A model generated the notes under the pieces. It was not told where the DNA came from. It ran no database searches and saw nothing but the letters and a program-made list of their open reading frames with translations. Of a stretch of DNA of 64,000 bases, positions 11,786 to 38,139 are shown piece after piece. Each line of letters opens with the position of its first letter. Positions within the stretch are counted from its first letter, which is position 1. The stretch comes from Glycera tridactyla (lineage: Eukaryota). The translations under genes were made by a program, and so were the position numbers. Location: assembly GCA_965644265.1 (NCBI GenBank), contig OZ286459.1, forward strand, positions 117,676,001-117,740,000. The letters are read 5' to 3'.

Positions 11786-13182
11786 TCAAAATTTGGTTAC
11801 TGATGATTCCAAATGCACTTCCATGCCCATGCTGATGGGGTCGGCTCCGAGTGCGGGCTTTTCCTCTTCTAGACAGCAGTTATGTGTGGCCAACTTATAG
11901 AAGAGTTCAAAGATCTCGAATAAGACCAGAAAACTGACGCCTGACCATAAAGTGAATGCTCCACCAAGACTGCCCAGCATTGGGGCTAACTCCAGTGCGG
12001 GTCTATCCTTGTATGTCGTCACATCCTTGCTGTTATATCTGATCACCACCTGGAGAAAATTCTCTTCAATCAGACCAAGTGACTTGACAAGATTTGCGCT
12101 GCCAGCAGGATCAGAACCGAGTAGCTGATACGCCCGTTCGTAGGCAGCAAACGCCTCGGATAGATACGAGTGATTACGGATGTATTTCTCATAAAAACTC
12201 AGCTGGTAAGCTGGATGTGGCCACGGTTGTAGATATGTGTGAACTTCCTGATGAACGGACCGGCACTGTATGTGGCATTCGTCGTGACAGTGCGGGATCT
12301 GTAAACTGTGCAGACAATCTCGTTTGGGGCTTGGCTCATGGCGGTCCCCATCGAATGACTCGCAGAAGTTGTACTCGTTCTGTTGCGAACGCAGAGCATA
12401 GATATTATTCGACAAACATTGACATTTTTCGATGACGTAGCTCTGTCGACATAAATCCTCGCATGATTCTTCCGTGTAATTAATCAGGGCATTCGCTGTC
12501 CATTTCTTGTCCAGGAACGAGCTAGTCTGACATTTGGAGTACGGATCGGGTAAAAGTATCCTCTGCGATGTTTCGAGCGAGACTTCAACATGGTGACCGG
12601 GTGGAATGCCGACAGCATCGCCTAGGTCTGGTAGAGTGTTGGGACTGTGAGGAAGCAGGGTCATACCTGATGCGTACGTCGCATCAAGACTTAACTCGTA
12701 ATCGGTGAGCAGGGTCTTCAGAAAGTCGTCCAGATAGATGATGAGGACAACACCTTTCACATCTAACCGACCCTCCGTGAAATCAAAGCCATGAACTGAC
12801 TCGGAGCTTCCAGAGAGGCTGTCCTCTCTCAGGCGCAGAGTGTAACACATTTGATCTGGATACGGGCGGGATGGTATGATCAAATGGCGGCAGTCGTGAC
12901 CATGATCGTCCATAGTAAGGTGATCTGCAAAGGAGAACCACCTACAGTCCATGATGAATGATTTTGCAGCTTCGTGCAGTTCTTCATGCGTTTGTTTACT
13001 ACTGGCTAGGAAGGTGACCATGTCATGTATAGTTGGCACAGCGTCCTGCGGCCAGGTCTGGGTGTGATTCTCATAGGCTTCCCGTATACCGGGTACGTTA
13101 GCAAATGGGTTACTGTTGCACATTGTGATGTCCGGGAAGGCCACCCTGATGCCTTCATCGATGATTGCAGTCACCACACGTC
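11786..13182 (-). CDS. DEG/ENaC gene, coding exon 2 (ectodomain, TM2, tail)
   Basis: Acceptor TTTTGCAG gives YTSG|RVVTAII...FPDITMCNSNPF (post-TM1 FPxxTxCN motif). Cys-rich thumb (YTEESCEDLCRQSYVIEKCQC), TM2 MLGSLGGAFTLWSGVSFLVLFEIFE. Confidence 0.92.
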
Positions 13183-14927
13183 CTGCAAAATCAAGGAACA
13201 CCTATAATTATTAATCAATCAAGGTGGTGGTAATGACATGTATCAAACCAAAGTAGTGTACGTTGTGTGATCCTGATCTATGGAAAGTACGTGCTCTTAG
13301 CTGCTCAACTTTGTCAATTTCGCCATTTCAAAGTTTTAATGGCACGAATGTATTGCATAGGTCTTCCGGCGATTATCGGACCTGGTTTCAAGTATTCTGC
13401 ATGCCTTTGAAGAGGATGCGCCATCATTTCATTGTTATTCATTCAGGGACTCGGCATTATCGGCGAATATTCGTATAAAACGGTGGGAATACAGAATACG
13501 GCCGCCCCACTTGCCGTGGTGAAATCAGGGGTGAAACCGACATATTTGGTGTTCTAAGGGGAAATATACAAGGGAACTTCACCCAAAACACATTTCAAGT
13601 CGTCAGAAATGACATCCATGACTGCCAGCGTGTTTCGTTTCAGTCCGATGCATATTCAAGATGCCAGGGCGAAAAACGTACCCGCAACAATTTATCTTGA
13701 CAAACTTAGAGATGTACCAGGCAGTTTTTCTTGTTTCCCGACTGGTACTCATGGCATAACACTAGTTGGTCACTTGCCCACCTTCCTGGATAGCTGTATC
13801 ACTGTCCTTTAAACAAATACTGAATTATTATGACCAAACATGTGTAAACACCAAAGGGGAAATTTTTCCAAAGTTGTCCTCGGTGGGGGTTGGTGGCTGT
13901 GTGCTTGAGTAGATGGGCTCGGTGAATGATGGTTTCTGGATGATAACTAAAAAAGTTTTAATTGTTTTCAAATGAAAATTGGTGGGTAGGATTATCTTAG
14001 ATATGGCAAGACGCCTATCAATTTTGGAATGACTCTCTTGAATTTGTCTATATTTCTGCTATTTTTCTTTATTTATGGCATAATTCAATAAAATTTTCAA
14101 AACTGGCTAGTAAAAACAAAAACAAATCTGGTGAATTGCCTTTTTTTCCACTAATTTTTCTCGTCCAGTAATGAACTACAGAATGAATGGAAAAAATTGC
14201 ATCCAGCAAGTATTCCTGTATGGTCTATGGTGTGATTTGTGATTTTTCGGTGATTATTTTCATTGGGTTCCATGGACTATTGGGTCTTTTTTGTTGTGAA
14301 AATGACATTTTCTCCATGTGAGTTTCCCAATTCATGTTGCATTAGGATACTAGACAAAATAAATAAGAGGTTTGATTCATTCAAAAATAGTGCTTATGTG
14401 ATATTTCTTGATGGAATTGTATTTTGACATTTTTTTTGCATTTTCTCAGGATTTCGACAATTAGATAAATAGCTACAGCTGAAAAATGAGACTGGTGACC
14501 CCAACTTGTTTATCAGGAAATCCGATCTATACATCACTAGAAATGATCATACGAAATTTCAAGTATGTGGCAAGTTTTTCAAAGACTGCCTCATTCATTC
14601 TTAAGCGCTCTCACAAAACATGATCACAAGATGATGAGGAAGGTTGTCAAGTAGCAGTACTTCACAGTTCAGACACACCGTGACATGTCTCATATGAAGA
14701 TAATCATTGATGGCATGTCTGATTATGTGAATGTCTGGGAGCTTACACTCGGACCTGATAGCAGTGCTTTTATTTTAAACAGGGCTATGTCAATTAGTTT
14801 GCATGTTATGGACGAGAAAGTCAGACTCCTGTTCCAGTGGAGGTAGAGAGGCTTGCGTTATTTGACGCGGACAAATATTCAACGCTGACGAAAAAACATA
14901 GCCCCAACTGAAGAAAACCCCTCACTT

Positions 14928-21454: not shown

Positions 21455-21595
21455 CTACTCGTCTTCATCCTCGTCGACTCCGATGAGAGCCAGAAGCATC
21501 TTCTTGTAGTCACCACCGCAGTCGCTCTCAATGAATTCCCGGAGGTACTGTTCGTACTTGCGTCTGAACTGTATTCTGATTGGAATCATATCAAT
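21455..21595 (-). CDS. Annexin terminal exon, distal variant
   Basis: TTTTTCAG|ATT; IDMIPIRIQFRRKYEQYLREFIESDCGGDYKKMLLALIGVDEDEDE*. AATAAA on the minus strand at 21379-21384. Confidence 0.88.
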   Translation of the reverse strand: MDMIPIRIQFRRKYEQYLREFIESDCGGDYKKMLLALIGVDEDEDE

Positions 21596-24114: not shown

Positions 24115-24246
24115 TTATTCATCCTCAGCACCTATGAGTGCAAGAAGCATGCGCTTGTAGTCACCACTGCAGTCACCCTTGACGAAGTCTCGTAAGGAGT
24201 CCTGATATCTATGTGCGAATGTCACTTTAATAGGTATCATATCGAT
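24115..24246 (-). CDS. Annexin terminal exon, proximal variant
   Basis: TTATTCAG|ATC; IDMIPIKVTFAHRYQDSLRDFVKGDCSGDYKRMLLALIGAEDE*. Confidence 0.9.
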   Translation of the reverse strand: MDMIPIKVTFAHRYQDSLRDFVKGDCSGDYKRMLLALIGAEDE

Positions 24247-28951: not shown

Positions 28952-29976
28952 CTGCAAAGAAAGAAAGGTATCCAGGTTGCTACAGACACTTCCTTAGTTT
29001 TCAACAGGTAGGACAAAATATATACATGTATCCAGTATCTATGTAGCATTGAACATCTTGGAAAACTCCTTATCAGATGAAAAATCTCGATGCTCATCTC
29101 ATCTATGTGTTCTGACATATAATCAATCGAACTTGGATTACAACAGATGAAATCATTGTTGGTGTTATAGAAAACTTTTGATGATCAACTAATGAAAAAT
29201 CTCCAAAGCGAATGTCGACATTTCATCTGTGGATACCATGTAATCGCGTCCGCTCTACCCTGACCCACCATGTATTAAGTGGAAGAATCCATACTGAATA
29301 AACTCTAAGGTACTCTGTAGGATATTAGTAGTTGTACACAAGTGGTCGAGACAGGTGCGCATGTGTGTGCGAGGTTTGTTTGTTTCTTTGTTTGAGGTTT
29401 AACGGCATGTATCAACCCACAGGATTATGTATGCCGTGTGTTCCTGATTAATGAAAGCTAGATGGTCTCTCCCCTGCAGACATCACTCTCACAAACCCTG
29501 AACACAAGATGATGGGGAACTCCCTGAAAGGTTTTCAAGTGGAAGTAGCTGATGGTTCAGACACACCCCTACCAACTCTACAATAAAAACACATTGAACC
29601 TGATGATGGCATATCTAACTATGTAACTGGCTGGAAGCTAACACTCAAGCCTGATAGCTATGCTTTTTTTAACGCAGAGCGCAGTACTCGAAACAAGGAA
29701 AAGCATTAGGTTTGGAGAATACTCAAACAATGTCTTCAATTACGAACTGTCAACGCAGTGTATTGATATTTAGACTAAGTATGTCACGGTGATGCAGCTC
29801 AGAGGTGAGGGCACTACTTCCACGTCTATCTATTTTGGGTCAAATTGTTTTCAACATTACAACGAATAACGGGAGATCTGTATCGGCACAATCGCTGCCC
29901 TTCATTTCCAACAGCAGGACCTAATAATCCAACTGATACAATGGAAGCTCTATATACTAGGTATTCCAGGGCGTAC

Positions 29977-30090
29977 CTTCATGGCTTTTCGCAGTTCCTT
30001 GGCATCATACAGACGTGTTGGCTGCAGCATAGCAACGCAGACATCTTCGAAGTTTCCTCCCAGTTCACCCTTGAGCTCATCAATCAAATC
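29977..30090 (-). CDS. Annexin exon (end of repeat I, start of repeat II)
   Basis: AATAG|GAT; [38 protein letters not shown]; AAG|GTACGC. Confidence 0.93.
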
Positions 30091-33000
30091 CTATTCGAAC
30101 AAACAAAGAAGATTATGAAATACACAACAATCCCAACGGTAGTATACAATAGAATGCAAACTATTTTCATTGCATAAGATTGTGAATAACAAATTGACCT
30201 TGCGGTCGTATCACTTGCTTATACAAACATATCATAAACTGCCGAATAAAATGAAACACAATCTATTGGGAATAGTTGTCGGTTTGTGCCGATCGATATC
30301 GATATCTCATAGGGAGCATTTGCTGTAATAACACAGCCATCCAAATGAAGTAGCTGAATGAATATTTTCGATGTCACTACGATATATATAGAAAGCAAGT
30401 TACTTCTTATTCAATGATATGGAAATTAGGTATTCTATCCATCAACCATTTTCATTTTCACAGCGACGATTTATTTATTTCAAAACTCGATCTAGAACTG
30501 ATTCAGCTCGTCCTTCGCAGCTAATATTCTCTAAGATAATTATCTCTCGAGGTCAAAGTCATACACAACACCCAGAAAAAGTACATGCAAGAGAAATAAA
30601 TGTAATTGAGAAACATTTGTGTATGGGAGAGATAAGTGTTCAGAAGGGTGAAAAAGAAAAACACACGAAACTAGTAACCATAAGATTCTTCGATATAATA
30701 GTGATGTATGCAGAGTGCATACAGAGCATCAGACTTTCTGACAGGTCAGTGGGCCCACATGACTCATAATTTGGAATATCACGGGTCATAATTTAAAATG
30801 TCTATCTATCAATGGTTGGTATGAAAAGAACGTGGACCAGCGGGCCCATTGAGAGATTATAGTGATAGAAAACAAGCAATGGTGGGTCATTTCATCAACT
30901 AATACTCGAAAACAGGATAAAGGGTTTGATTAGCACCCGTCAAATTAAAGTGCAAGAGAAACAAACATGAACAGCGAAAAGAACAAACAGGTGCAATTTG
31001 ATACATGTTCACTCAAAAATGAATCCTGGATAATATAAACCGTGTGCATATCTCTATAATAGAACTGTCGGGGAGGGGGGGGGGGGGGGGCAGCTATCAT
31101 CGATACAGCAAAACAACACTGCACTCTTACAGTCACTTGATTCTATGAGGCTCACGTTTTTATTTAAATGAAGGACAGGACCACAGCCGATCTATATCTC
31201 ATTTTGCCAGCCTTGACGACTCACGGGCAAGGGAAGTGTCGCTTAAGGTAGATATTTACACAGGAGCAATTCGAAAAGTCCACCAAATCGATGGTGATGA
31301 GGACATGGCGTATTGATTCAGCGCTGTGTAACGATGGCCTCTGTAATCCCTAGTATATTAGCTTTATTCCTTGTCAGGTTATGGAAAATGTTGTCGAATC
31401 TTTCTCGAGGAGGTACACATTGGCAACACTGCATAAAGCATGGATGACTGCATCCTGGATGCGAATAAGCAAGCTTACAAAGCGATTTGCTTATTCCAAT
31501 GGATGCCCAATATCTCCCTTGCCTTTGCACAGTTTTCCACTTTTAGCAGCCATTGGTGCATCACTCATGTGCTGTACTAGCTCGAGCAAGCAACGCGATT
31601 CTAAAATGCAGCAGCGCGTAATACGCAACTCAGCATGAAAGCCAACAGCGTACAAATGCATTGAAAAGATACATAAACAAACAATACACTGAAGATGAGA
31701 AATTATAATCTTAAAAGGAATCGTCGATACTGCATGGTAAACTTCAGCCTCGACCATCGCATAACATTTGCATGTTTATTCCCTATTTTACAAACGGAAA
31801 CTGATATTATACTTTCAACAAATTTGAAGATGGGTTGGCGGCCTGGCATGGCGATGAAAGGTAGCCAGATATGCCGGACTTCCAAACTCCAGGGCAGGTA
31901 CAGTAATTGAACTGAGTGTTTTTCCCGAGCAATATAGTTTGCCAGCACTTGTGAAAATATGACGTCGTCACTGCTTGAATGATGACATTTTATATATCAC
32001 TTGAACAAATGCCATGATTTAACAAGGGGTAAGACACAAGAACCTAGTGTTCTCGATAGAACAATCATACTCAAACAATGTAGCACTGCCATTGAAAAAA
32101 TGAAAATAATCTGATTTCTGCCCTATAGTGGACCAAGCAATGACCACGAAACTTTCGACATTGATACCTGAAGCAAGCTGGATACACACATTCTGCCCAA
32201 CTTTGCCACAGTCGTTGGCATTCACCTTCATCGGAAATCAATGAATTAACTCAATTGTCTCAGGACAATATTGACAACAATATTTGGGGGGTGATTTTAT
32301 ATGGTATTTCACAAACAAAAACTATGAAAACTGATCCTAAGGGAGCCAGTTTGTTGAGTCAATATGCTCAATTCAACAAATGATTCAATGTCCCTTTCAT
32401 GCCAACTGAAAAGAAAACACTCACATCTTTTGTTTTCAATAAAATCGTGAAAGAAATGAGTCGAAATATTCATTCCGATGATGTCAAATGAGGAAGAAAC
32501 ATATGAGCTTGGGCCAATTTGGTTAATTTTCCCGATGGGTGGCTCCGCATATAGGAAGTCTCGAGCTTCGCTCATTGCTTGTTCCACTCTTAATGTGTCT
32601 GTAAGTAGTGATTCACCCTTCCCCAAAAAAGCGGGAGCACCAAGCGGAAATCATGTTATTCAATAACAATGGATATCCAAGTCCAATGTCGCATGTCAGC
32701 AGAGAGGGATTTGATCAAGATGTCTAGGCTTGATAAGTGAGAAAAGACGGATGGAGTAGACGGAACGACACTCACACGATCAAGTCGGCTTATAAACTAA
32801 TTACTCGGAAAATATAATCTAGCTCAAACAGCACACGATAAAGCTAAGCATGAGACTGATAAAAAACACAAAAGAGCTTGCGAAAGGTGAGTAAAATCCT
32901 ACATTCGACGAAGTTACACTCGACTATGCATATGGATCTAATCTACAATCCATTCCAAGTAGGTAATAGAAAGTTGTGTATCAGAACTTCAAATTTTCCG

Positions 33001-34242
33001 GCAGGTTGTTGGGCCCCTGTGACCCACAAACCAGAATTATCATGGGCCCGTATTTGAGATCATGGGTCATATCTTACGTATCAATGGATAATATGGATGC
33101 AATAGCTGGGCCAGTTGACCCATAGTAGGGAAAATTGAGGGGCCAAAATGGCAGAAATGAAGGCCGAGGGACTGGGCCCAACAACAATCTGAAGCTCTGG
33201 TGTATATTTCAAGGATGAATGTTGGTAAAGTGGTACAGACTCGTTTACGATCACAAGGACGGTGCTATATGCTACATACTCCATGCACACGCAACAACCA
33301 CACAAGTTGGCAAACAGAGGGAATGAAGAGTCGGGATCAAGTTTGAGTTTTAGCAAAAACGCACAATAGTTACATTCTGGAATAACAAAAGTCTGTCTAG
33401 GAGCTTCTAGGACGACAGAATAATTCAGAAAGAGTGCATATAGATAACAAAATATGCTGCCGATACCTCTGATGGTTTTAGAAAATTTATCGGCTGTGTT
33501 CAAAACCATGTCTCAATCCAGCAGATCATATATGCTGAATTTCATACTAGGAAAACTTAATCTGACTTTTGAACATTGACTATTGAAAAGTTCCAAGTTA
33601 ATGCCACCAGCTATCAAAATACACAACAGCCATGCCGATACATCCTGGCCCTTGTGGTATCCAGTCGTCAACAACTTGTGGTATCCAGATATAGGAGCCG
33701 CTATATGTCTTGTTGAGGGAATATTGGTGCCAAAATGATATTATTCGCCATTGTTGTACGTTTGCGTCACCAGAGATCGCATAAGATAAAAGTGTTGCCA
33801 AAGACCGCGTAGCAACGGTGGCTAACTCATTGAAAACAATGCTATCGAACCAGAGTTGTCTCATTTGAATTGAGAGACCAAAACGGTTTGAGATATGTTG
33901 GCATACATTGAAATATTTTGGTATACAGCTGATGCCTCGCAACTTAGCCGATACAAAACGTTTGACGACAGGATACAGAACTAGTACGAGTACCTTCAAC
34001 TGACAAACCACCAGAGATAAGACAAGACAGCATTACCTTCACCATCTTAATGGGAAAATCTTATATATAACAATTTGGAAGATGTGAGGGACTTCCCACC
34101 GATATTGATGCATTTCTTGTGATCTTATATTAAAAGAGAAGCTCGCTAGAACATAGCCAAACTGAGGTATGTCATGTGTGGCCTATACATAATCAGGTCT
34201 GTTGACATATCAGTTGTGACTACGTTTGATGTTGCGACAAAC

Positions 34243-34337
34243 CTCGCCATACTGCTGTTTGAACCTGTCTTTAATCTCCAACCGCTGTTCAAGGTTATGC
34301 GCTTTCATAACCTCAATGATTTCATCTTCGTTGGTAC
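34243..34337 (-). CDS. Annexin repeat-I exon, variant B (mutually exclusive)
   Basis: TTGCCAG|GT...GAG|GTTTGT; 95 nt, phase 1 to 0; (G)TNEDEIIEVMKAHNLEQRLEIKDRFKQQYGE. Confidence 0.88.
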
Positions 34338-34600
34338 CTGGCAAGTGGCATAAATAAGAAAGGCACATTAAATCACGTCTATGTTATAAGGAACAAAATA
34401 TATCACTGGTACCAATCGGTCTAGTCCATACCAAATTGCTGCATGTCAGTCGGGACTGGACTGGGAGTGACAAATAATCATTTGAAAATTCATATTCACA
34501 TTTTTATCCTTGTTGTCAAAGATTGAATCTAGACCAAAAAGTGAACAAGGTCTAACCATTGTCAATTGTGGAGTTTTCAGGGTGATGGTGTTTATCATCA

Positions 34601-34633
34601 AGATTATAGTGCCCATCCATTGGAACACATTGA
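34601..34633 (-). promoter_or_regulatory. 33-bp intronic element upstream of annexin variant exon B (candidate splicing selector)
   Basis: Plus-strand AGATTATAGTGCCCATCCATTGGAACACATTGA, 32/33 identical to 35087-35119. The regulatory role is inference. Confidence 0.45.
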
Positions 34634-34943
34634 TGACAGGAAGATTCGAATCTAATTAGATCTGCAAGTTCGTTCACGTTCAAGAAAACCTTGAATTCAA
34701 TGGAAGCTGAGATTGCTTAGAGTGAACAAGCTGTGATAACGACATTATTCAATTCAATTCGATTTCTCATATTCATTTACACAAATCATAGTTTTGTATT
34801 GACACATACACCTGGGGAAGTCAATGACTGTTTCACGGGATACATAGGAAAGAATGACTTTAACAAAATTGGCAGCAATGTGGTATGGATATCAGACTTC
34901 ATGTGGCCACCAGATTCGATGTAAAACCGGGAGCCAAACAGAC

Positions 34944-35038
34944 CTCGCCATAAGATGTCTTAAAGTAATCAGCGGTTGCCAAACGCTCGTCGTGGCACAA
35001 GTGGCCTAAAGTTTCGGCAATCTCATCTTCACTCGTAC
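34944..35038 (-). CDS. Annexin repeat-I exon, variant A (mutually exclusive)
   Basis: ATTACCAG|GT...GAG|GTCTGT; 95 nt, phase 1 to 0; (G)TSEDEIAETLGHLCHDERLATADYFKTSYGE; no stops. Confidence 0.8.
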
Positions 35039-35086
35039 CTGGTAATGATAATAACAGCACATGGTACACACAAATACAGTGATGTT

Positions 35087-35119
35087 AGATTATGGTGCCC
35101 ATCCATTGGAACACATTGA
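35087..35119 (-). promoter_or_regulatory. 33-bp intronic element upstream of annexin variant exon A (candidate splicing selector)
   Basis: Plus-strand AGATTATGGTGCCCATCCATTGGAACACATTGA, about 50 nt upstream of the exon A acceptor. The regulatory role is inference. Confidence 0.45.
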
Positions 35120-36554
35120 CTTCATTCCTGAGGCAGTAGTTTATTGATTGATTAATCAAGATGCTTAACGTTTCCTGATGCATGGCTGAATCATATAAGA
35201 CTAAAAGAGTGGGCCAATTCTCATACATATTGTTCAGGCAATACTTGAAATTAAAAAATATATAATTGGTGTATTGTGCGGCTATCCTTCTATCACGGGA
35301 AAAATACCATTGTCTGAATAAAAAGGAATTGCCCAACATCGCCAAATCACAGGATTAATGTTTTAGGTTGATGCAGCATATATCCCGACATGAACGGCTG
35401 ACCTTCGGTGAACCGGTCGTCAACACTGGACAAACATATGCGAACAGTACGATATCTTTCGACTATCCAATAATATCTCTGCTATCAATTGCCTTATAAA
35501 TCTTGTATACTGAAATCCACACAAGCAAGGATATGCTTGAATCCAATCAAGATTCTTGTTGTTACGAAGCAATTATGTGAGCTCATTCAATTACAGTGAA
35601 GTTATATGGAAAAGAATGAGACGAGGTTCATTAGAATGTGAGCATTTATCTTACGTCTCAAATCCGTGTCCTTCATGCCCGGGGCTTCGTGCTCATCACT
35701 TGCTCCACTCTAGTACCCGTATGTAGCAATTCGCCGGCCACTAGAGTCAAGCCTTTCATATCTCCTCAGAGTTCTCGCTGAACTTACCTCTCAAAAGTCA
35801 CTAATCTCATCTTACAACATTCACAGCACACGATTGACTTTATTCATGAAATGACCTAGCAGATTAGATCTTAGTTGGAATTATGACTAACGGCTTGGAA
35901 AATGCATTTCACGACTCCTTGTGTGCGAAGCATAAGTACAACGTGCCAAGTTGAAGGTTTCCAGCAAAGTTTGCATCACCGGACTTCCTAACACAAAACT
36001 TTTGAAGCAAACAGGCAAGTTCATTGATAACAAATTAGAGGAAGTGGACATACAGCTAGGTCATTAAGTACACAGTAATCTACATCTGTGTGTGCGCCAG
36101 AACAATATTTCCTGCAGCAAATTTGGGTAGAGCAGCTAATGCTTTAGTCAAATGCATTATGAGGTGACTTCAATTTTGCCATGAATGTCATTTCAAACTG
36201 ATGTATTGAGCTCCTGACATGGGGCCCATGTTTTGAGGCTTTCCAATCAGCATTGAATACAGACTGCGAGCTATATGAGTGGATACATTCTCTCCCAGGC
36301 TAATTGGGTGATGGCTAGCGCCAACAGTTACTGAGATAGAGCTAGAGTGCATCAGAGGAAACTTGCAAATACTCTCACAGTCACACAATACTTTCACTGT
36401 CATACAATCCTGATATTATCTCTGGCTGAAAATCACATGTGATATATAAAACTGCTATATCGTGAAGTGCTGCACTGGCATAGATAACTTAGATGTTAGA
36501 AGGACACACTGGGGAACATCACATTGACGAATACTGATGCCACATTCTACTCAC

Positions 36555-36624
36555 CAAATCCCTTCATTGCCTCCTTCAGTTTGGTGGCAGCGGCCTCAGC
36601 ATCGAAGTCTTCGTTGGGGTAAAC
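36555..36624 (-). CDS. Annexin gene, first identified coding exon (start of repeat I); the upstream ATG exon was not found
   Basis: TTGTAG|GTTTAC; VYPNEDFDAEAAATKLKEAMKGFG; donor G|GTGAGT (70 nt). Eight exons of one isoform join to 942 nt with consistent phases, covering the four annexin repeats. Confidence 0.88.
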
Positions 36625-38139
36625 CTACAACCACACAAGAAAGAAATCAATTATATATCTCCTACGTGCCGGGGACATATGCGTTTGTATTTCACCAGTT
36701 GGGATAAATCACTCCTCATATATATCTGAACTTGGGTGTAAAAGCTGCAAAAGAAAGTGATGCAATTCAATGGCTAGCTACTTTCATCTCGTTTGCTCCA
36801 CCTGGGCTGTATGGAGATGCCTAACAGGGCTATGGCTGGATTCAATCGAACCTAGTGTTCTTGAATCCACAATAAGTGGACACCCACTCAAATCACGCAA
36901 GGGTAGAGTGCTGAGATGGGAACTACCAATGCGCTTTTCATACAATGTTGATATAATCGCTGTGTGAAATCTCCAGGAAATACATCAAGACTGTCAGACA
37001 TACTTTCTTTCAAAAGTTTAGCGGAGATTAGTTAAGGATGCAGCCTCGCCGATTCTCCAATGACATTTGAAGCAAGAGTTGTAGCACCCCAATAATAATA
37101 GAACTGGGTAGTTAGTTTTGGCCTGGGTCGAGAGGGCTGCAGAGGGTGGATTAGTTCTACTGAAGCAGGGGCTTAGGCCATGTCAATCGATTGATGGATG
37201 GAGTTCTAGTCGTCTTCAAATGTTCAGCCCAACATCAATCAATTAGGTATGACCGATTTAGCAGCGGTACGAGTCTGGTAGCCGGGCTCATGGGGATGAA
37301 TAATCGGGGACCACGTAAAGCCGTATTTAACATCATATTCCACGAGAGATCAGAAGTGTAAGAGGGACAAAGGGAAAGGGGACACAAATGAGAGATGGAG
37401 AGAAAGGGAGAGGGAAAGTAGGGTTATAGGGTAGGATTATATGGAAGAGAGAGANNNNNNNNNNNNNNNNNNNNNNNNNNNNNNNNNNNNNNNNNNNNNN
37501 NNNNNNNNNNNNNNNNNNNNNNNNNNNNNNNNNNNNNNNNNNNNNNNNNNNNNNNNNNNNNNNNNNNNNNNNNNNNNNNNNNNNNNNAAACATAGAAGAG
37601 AGGGGCAGAGAGAAAGACAATTAGGAGGGGAGAGACGGGGAAGTGAGAGGGCAGGTCTAGGCATCCATGGAGCGTGGAAGTAAAATTGAGTCATTTGAAA
37701 TAAAACTGGGAATGTGTCACATGTGGTTGTGCGTGTATGTTGGCATCTACTGTACAGGTTTCAACCGCAGTTCGATTCTCACTCAGGACAGCTGCCAGGT
37801 CATGCTATGATACGGCACCATCATGTCGTCAGGGTTGGCACAATACATGCCCATCTCCACCCTATCTTGGTTAGGCCACGATTCTGAAATTCAATATTTC
37901 TCTGCATATTATTGGTTGTACTCCCACCAACAATGGATTGAAATGTACAGTGCTCCTGCGGTCTGGAGATAAAGTTGGGAAAGCAACATCCAATTTCGGA
38001 GACCGCATTTTAAGATACAAATCCATAATTTTGGCGACGGGATAAGAATAACGAGTGAATATGAAACCTGAAGAGACACATTACCCCAAGCCCAGTTGAT
38101 ATGCAGCGGCGTGCCACTTCACTGGTGGCCACTCCACAA

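Follow-up and report, generated by a model that had tools for sequence, protein, structure and literature searches.

The 64-kb stretch of Glycera tridactyla DNA analysed here, hereafter the window, carries an annexin gene on its minus strand, the coding exons of which were rebuilt from stop-free segments and splice sites. At one position within annexin repeat I the gene offers two versions of the same exon, A and B, lying between the shared exons U and D. In the order of transcription, the coding exons are as follows, the last line being a second copy of the terminal exon:

36555..36624, minus strand: shared upstream exon U, 70 nt, ending in phase 1; codes for repeat I helix A and for the beginning of the K-G-F-G calcium loop
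34944..35038, minus strand: variant exon A, the divergent version, 95 nt, phase 1 to 0; spliced as U-A-D in one public RNA run, X3
34243..34337, minus strand: variant exon B, the conventional version, 95 nt, phase 1 to 0; spliced as U-B-D in four of four public RNA runs
29977..30090, minus strand: shared downstream exon D, 114 nt; codes for repeat I helices D-E, with the acidic residue capping the calcium site
28951-28861, minus strand: coding exon E3, from a stop-free segment and splice sites
28279-28131, minus strand: coding exon E4, from a stop-free segment and splice sites
27562-27385, minus strand: coding exon E5, from a stop-free segment and splice sites
25912-25800, minus strand: coding exon E6, from a stop-free segment and splice sites
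24246-24115, minus strand: coding exon E7 with the stop codon, from a stop-free segment and splice sites
21455..21595, minus strand: exon E7', a duplicate of the terminal coding exon E7, with its own acceptor and its own stop codon

Spliced as U-(A or B)-D-E3-E4-E5-E6-E7, these exons yield an open annexin core of 313 residues with either variant. Matches to the Pfam Annexin profile (PF00191) fall on separate exons and make up a four-repeat annexin, and the assembled 313-aa product is 60–68% identical, end to end, to full-length annexins with a short N-terminus. Judging from its sequence, the gene is a short-N-terminus, ANXA13/B9-like annexin. For full-length homology searches, a contiguous cDNA (L009) served as a proxy query; the closest named annexins are 59–60% identical and equally distant in annelids and amphioxus. 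A protein search with exon E5 returned only relatives that are ~50% identical, along with exon-sized fragments, all of which led to short contigs, with the exception of one related annexin gene (L004). Since the relatives begin with M-A-T, a start that stands ahead of their counterpart of exon U, our model lacks a short first coding exon; a simple pattern search for an exon encoding M-A-T in the 64-kb window did not find one.

Located 2.5 kb downstream of E7, exon E7' shares with it 54.5% protein identity over 44 residues (tblastn). It is preceded by a strong pyrimidine tract and an AG acceptor, is in phase 0 and scores 28.3 bits against the Pfam Annexin profile; it is probably an alternative 3′ exon, as predicted from these signals. 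An AATAAA hexamer at 24115-24120 overlaps the stop codon of E7 and, if used, would leave the corresponding isoform with a very short 3′ UTR. No other annexin gene was found in the 64-kb window. Elsewhere in the window, a 471-aa open reading frame on the minus strand (11786-13201) matches the Pfam ASC family of amiloride-sensitive sodium channels (E 1.6e-38); a word search recovered no relative of this frame at E 1e-10.

Exons A and B are adjacent and homologous, of equal length and phase, and each is provided with its own splice sites. An earlier note, made from the letters alone, had described them as two stop-free exons of 95 nt running from phase 1 to 0 between valid splice sites and sharing 15 of 32 residues, and both the anatomy and, on alignment, the identity hold true (at the nucleotide level, 47 of 95 positions are the same). 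Both exons are preceded by ...ccag, at the end of pyrimidine-rich acceptor tracts ending in cag, and are followed by gtctgt or gtttgt, the donors being GAG/gtctgt and GAG/gtttgt. The exon A and exon B peptides find each other reciprocally in tblastn searches of the whole 64-kb window (E 1.7e-4), and the same searches with the two peptides revealed no third copy of the exon. Both match positions 14–44 of the 66 positions of the Pfam Annexin profile, B with 28.3 bits and A with 14.6 bits. The flanking exons are also those named in the earlier note, except that the upstream exon starts at 36624 rather than at 36625, which makes it 70 nt long.

The reading frame constrains how the two exons can be used. 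When A and B are joined, codon 66 becomes a stop, 710 nt ahead of the last junction, and when both are skipped, codon 27 does, bearing out the previous claim that the inclusion of both exons or of neither would break the frame. With stop codons so early and so far upstream of the last junction, forms with both exons or with neither would be unproductive. Two other familiar causes of exclusivity were considered and ruled out: steric hindrance, the intron between A and B being 606 nt long, and U2/U12 incompatibility, the splice sites being of the ordinary U2 type and none resembling the U12 consensus. The reading frame is the sole constraint on exclusivity shown here.

Evidence on actual splicing came from the assembled contigs of the four best-matching public runs, which represent four samples of one study and were compared with the window over 29950-35949. 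Depth is 200–1100 on exons versus 0–8 in most intron bins, which identifies the four runs as RNA, and the contigs jump 4.1–4.9 kb at CT..AC ends, that is, GT..AG on the minus strand. The joint of B to D (30090/34243) is present in four of four runs at depths of 411–949, and that of A to D (30090/34944) in run X3, at a depth of 443 versus 949 for B, so that exon A accounts for ~32% of the depth at the variant position in this run. On the other side, contigs reaching the acceptors at 34338 (B, all runs) and 35039 (A, X3) extend into the last 25–69 bases of U. Taken together, the joints to D and the presence of the end of U at both variant acceptors indicate that U-A-D and U-B-D both exist: U and D flank each variant in separate transcripts, those with B in four runs and those with A in run X3. 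No joint of A to B was reported among the assembled contigs of the four runs, in which rare forms are dropped. The junctions that the earlier note had proposed for A and B, on the side of U and on that of D, are accordingly present in public RNA contigs, those of A in X3; the idea of exclusive use is supported, and the opposite outcome that the note had envisaged, namely a pseudo-exon A that never enters transcripts, is excluded by the joint of A to D. In the three runs other than X3, the contig passes straight through B, which shows that A is less used in these samples, not necessarily that it is absent, given that minor forms are dropped from contigs. Exon B is shown to be the default form, and A is abundant in one of the four samples.

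The variant contigs of X3, A and B alike, carry only 20–25 letters of each flanking exon, as would follow from a two-way bubble in a de Bruijn graph. For the A-containing contig, such short flanks could alternatively mean that it was derived from another locus, i.e., a paralogue with identical short flanks, or that it is an assembly artefact. This explanation is barely credible, considering that short flanks are what a bubble of this kind is expected to produce and that B shows the same truncation in X3; furthermore, the joints fall exactly on the AG and GT that flank exon A in the window, which holds no other annexin gene from which the contig could have come. The intron contigs of the RNA runs differ from the window by ~3–5%, and no differing letters lie inside A, B or D among the best-supported differences listed, where any difference in the deep exon contigs would probably rank. 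Two intronic segments, 30550-30949 and 35550-35749, show a contig depth of 15–200, many loose ends and poor agreement with the window; most likely, these are dispersed repeats transcribed elsewhere.

We consider it highly probable that A and B are a genuine mutually exclusive pair that originated by tandem duplication of a 95-nt exon located after the G-x-G-T loop of repeat I. Under this reading, the exon was duplicated in tandem within the annexin gene, giving rise to A and B; U is spliced to either A or B and then to D; and the outcome is two annexins of 313 or more residues that differ in 32 residues only, those of helices B and C of repeat I. Disruption of the frame followed by nonsense-mediated decay would keep the productive mRNAs exclusive.

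The two versions of the exon differ sharply in how closely they adhere to the annexin family, as assessed with a profile built from the equivalent 32-residue block of 144 relatives. Exon B scores 56.8 bits, within the range of the family (for the 144 blocks, mean 63.2, sd 6.2 and minimum 34.1), whereas exon A, with 33.3 bits, falls below every one of the 144 orthologous blocks. In A, isoleucine at position 8 (90% of the family) is replaced by alanine, I/V10 by threonine, Q18 by glutamate and I22 (78%) by threonine, and His, Cys and His are gained at positions 13, 15 and 16, respectively; G1, T2, E4, I7, L11, R19, F26, K27, Y30 and G31 are all retained. The motif LGHLCHDER, to which the earlier note had drawn attention, is present in A, but the QR signature, thought to be lost altogether, is only half lost: the glutamine, found in 94% of the 144 relatives, is replaced with glutamate, and the arginine is kept. 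When used alone, exon A had no annexin match in the PDB, whereas exon B aligns to residues ~31–61 of the solved annexins A4 and A5, a stretch that in established annexin structures comprises repeat I helices B and C and comes immediately behind the G-x-G-T loop. The profile scores, the retained residues and the PDB result combine to characterize B as the conventional exon and A as a fast-evolving yet annexin-shaped one.

In established annexin structures, a type II calcium site is formed by the G-x-G-T loop and a downstream acidic residue. In the window gene, the K-G-F-G-T loop begins in exon U and is completed by the two invariant codons that open A or B, and an acidic residue (E in ...LKGELGG...) follows ~38–39 residues downstream of the loop, in shared exon D, completing the sequence features of such a site. 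With the loop and the acidic cap encoded in shared exons or invariant codons, the calcium site is predicted to be kept in both isoforms. Given the replacement of conserved buried residues (I8A, I/V10T and I22T), the Q18E change and the added His and Cys, variant A probably affects how repeat I packs or how stable it is, or else its sensitivity to a partner or a metal, rather than abolishing calcium binding.

The equivalent exon is a single-copy one in four loci, namely those of the related annexin gene mentioned above (L004), Capitella (L013), Ridgeia (L014) and Branchiostoma belcheri (L015), and no second copy was found in any of the four. A metagenome scan with the 61-aa open stretch around exon A did not yield a relative; a word search with this stretch gave no candidate either, an outcome of no weight given the length filter of that search. 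Parallels to the window pair emerged when all the fetched family members were screened for pairs that are near-identical except for one block. Two proteins from a marine metatranscriptome, P0151 and P0312, are 99.6% identical after the block and share 13 of 32 residues within it. Their cDNAs (L016 and L017) have a common 5′ UTR and, outside nucleotides 80–174 of the coding sequence, differ at ~4.6% of nucleotides, the differences being scattered and located nearly all at third codon positions; inside nucleotides 80–174, ~46% of positions differ, and the boundaries of this 95-nt segment are the same as in A and B. In a second marine taxon, P0154 and P0164 are 96% identical outside the block and again share 13 of 32 residues within it. 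Thus, the marine relatives resemble the window gene in having two versions of the same 95-nt exon in otherwise near-identical transcripts; they are known from cDNAs alone, whereas for the window pair the genomic order of the exons and the introns are available. The P0151 cluster also includes a metatranscriptome fragment of 236 aa, P0313, the block of which mixes the two exon versions of its species; this is probably an assembly chimera across the bubble.

When the two marine taxa are compared to each other, the rest of the protein is ~81–82% identical, and the two exon versions share 27 of 32 and 23 of 32 residues, compared with 12–14 of 32 between the two versions. The conservation of each version between the taxa, set against the divergence between the versions, indicates that both predate the split of the two taxa and have been conserved under constraint. 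In a tree of the 32-residue blocks, window exon B is placed inside the relatives' first version (97/92), and the second versions form a clade of their own (98/97), whereas window exon A is a very long branch that has no reliable place. Constraining A to group with the relatives' second version lowers the log-likelihood by 1.2 units (AU p 0.43), and constraining it to group with B lowers it by 9.7 units (AU p 0.19); neither arrangement is rejected. A common and old origin of A and the relatives' second version is favoured but not shown by these comparisons.

The case against the pair is that A is an outlier and was assembled in one of four samples, all of which come from one study. Conceivably, exon A could be a decaying duplicate, its inclusion being splicing noise or an individual polymorphism and the resulting isoform being devoid of function, as its score below all 144 orthologous blocks and the replacement of conserved hydrophobic residues might suggest, along with its presence in only one of four samples and the single-copy state of the exon in four related genomes. 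Such decay is improbable, though, when confronted with the ~32% of depth that A attains in run X3, with its intact frame and splice sites, and with the lack of differences in A among those listed despite the 3–5% divergence of the introns. Moreover, two relatives keep two versions of this exon, each conserved between species. In the introns, where the choice between the two exons might be controlled, four short elements stand out:

35087..35119, minus strand: copy 1 of a 33-nt element, 49–81 nt upstream of exon A
34601..34633, minus strand: copy 2 of the 33-nt element, 264–296 nt upstream of exon B
34872..34889, minus strand: arm 1 of an inverted repeat, 18 nt, 55 nt downstream of the exon A donor
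34425..34442, minus strand: arm 2 of the inverted repeat, 18 nt, complementary to arm 1 at 17 of 18 positions, 88 nt upstream of the exon B acceptor

The two copies of the 33-nt element are identical at 32 of 33 positions in the midst of flanking intron sequences that cannot be aligned; the element is unique in the window, shuffles produced no match at all, and no copy was detected in the relatives' loci that were fetched. Obvious candidate causes of this identity are a protein-binding site and gene conversion. None of 200 shuffles yielded an inverted repeat as long as the 18-nt one in the A-B intron, and both the minimum-energy and the centroid folds of this intron contain it. The minimum free energy of the whole intron equals that of shuffles (z −0.03), i.e., there is no general excess of structure. 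Tested as a potential transposon, the intron had neither a second copy in the window nor a terminal-repeat signature, and an Rfam search of 29900-36700 gave no match.

A published model of competing RNA structures predicts that arms are duplicated after tandem exon duplication (PMC6071210), and selector-like repeats, one upstream of each variant exon, are indeed present in the form of the 33-nt copies. Within the pre-mRNA, both copies form their most stable predicted duplex with the same segment, 31513-31494 (−26.4 and −24.1 kcal/mol). It could accordingly be imagined that docking-site and selector structures decide between A and B, with the 33-nt copies, so similar within an otherwise unalignable intron, acting as selectors that pair with 31513-31494 downstream of B. 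We regard this arrangement as decidedly improbable. The stability of the partner is not beyond chance, because an equally or more stable one arises in 42 of 100 dinucleotide shuffles; in addition, the copies lie upstream of the exons and the partner downstream of the cluster, so that a duplex with copy 1 would leave A and B together in the loop. On these two grounds, the segment 31513-31494 was rejected as evidence of a docking site.

A broader version of the preferred reading can be put forward. A and B might be the local form of a module that this annexin lineage has long conserved in two versions within repeat I, A being orthologous to the relatives' second, ‘GTSE...’ version; in combination with the duplicated last exon, four isoforms would be formed that differ in the packing of repeat I and repeat IV; tissue or condition would govern which of A and B is chosen, through the 33-nt elements and the 18-bp stem; and the His-x-Cys-His of A would act in a metal- or redox-dependent manner of a kind that annexin cores are not known to show. 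As a whole, this extended scenario is rather unlikely.

Annexin cores are usually seen as invariant modules of four repeats, the splice variants of the family being located mostly in the N-terminal tail. In vertebrates, such variants include the six-residue cassette of ANXA6 and the N-terminal insert that distinguishes ANXA13 a and b, that is, cassettes through which residues, mostly of the N-terminal tail, are gained or lost. One such isoform, annexin XIIIb, is the subject of PMC2120424. The vertebrate variants have alternative splicing in common with A and B but do not involve a swap of helices within a core repeat. Our literature searches found no published description of a mutually exclusive or duplicated exon in an annexin core, in agreement with the earlier note, which knew of none; the remark on novelty does not extend to the databases, given that RefSeq already includes such a pair, in repeat IV, from amphioxus. 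The Branchiostoma belcheri isoforms X1 and X2 (XP_019645182.1 and XP_019645183.1, respectively) differ only in a repeat IV exon block, which corresponds to a tandem genomic pair (L015, 8077-8193 and 8847-8978), and models of B. lanceolatum (CAH1255325 and CAH1255326) show the same pair of repeat IV exons. The amphioxus annexin parallels the window gene, to which it is orthologous (~58–60% identical), in that isoforms of equal length are formed by swapping one internal core exon. It differs in that the swap affects the counterpart of E6, which codes for the calcium loop and helix B of repeat IV, and that the repeat I exon is single. No paper describing the amphioxus repeat IV pair was found, and it is known from database models alone.

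Outside of the annexin family, the closest analogues are exons 9 and 10 of PKM (PMC3498831) and exons 7a and 7b of ATE1 (PMC7797038), which, like A and B, are adjacent, homologous exons of equal length, exactly one of which is included in each productive mRNA. In those pairs, defined protein factors or validated competing RNA structures are involved, whereas A and B display the reading-frame constraint alone.

Taken together, these comparisons indicate that A and B are a fresh instance of a well-known mechanism in a family for which no published case was found, with parallels already contained in public transcripts and RefSeq; it is a real but fairly ordinary exon duplication creating alternative isoforms. 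What the pair offers is a natural swap of two helices of repeat I that leaves the calcium loop and its capping residue untouched, and the same swap occurs in at least two further marine species. The window pair, the two marine species and the repeat IV swap of amphioxus jointly suggest that exon duplication accompanied by exclusive splicing is a recurrent route of core diversification in this annexin lineage. The isoform pairs are ready material for studying the role of helices B and C of repeat I in stability, membrane binding or the choice of partners. Variant exons such as A are easily missed by automated annotation.

The other end of the gene has a precedent of its own. Xia et al. 2001, cited in PMC3426547, reported three isoforms of silkworm annexin IX, A, B and C, that arise via alternative C-terminal exons; they resemble E7 and E7' of the window in being alternative versions of the last coding exon and differ from A and B in that the variation concerns a C-terminal exon with alternative 3′ ends and not an internal exon. 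In Acanthosepion pharaonis, two models of the orthologous annexin, P0191 and P0302, diverge only once the last exon begins, which may reflect an alternative C-terminal exon or mis-annotation.
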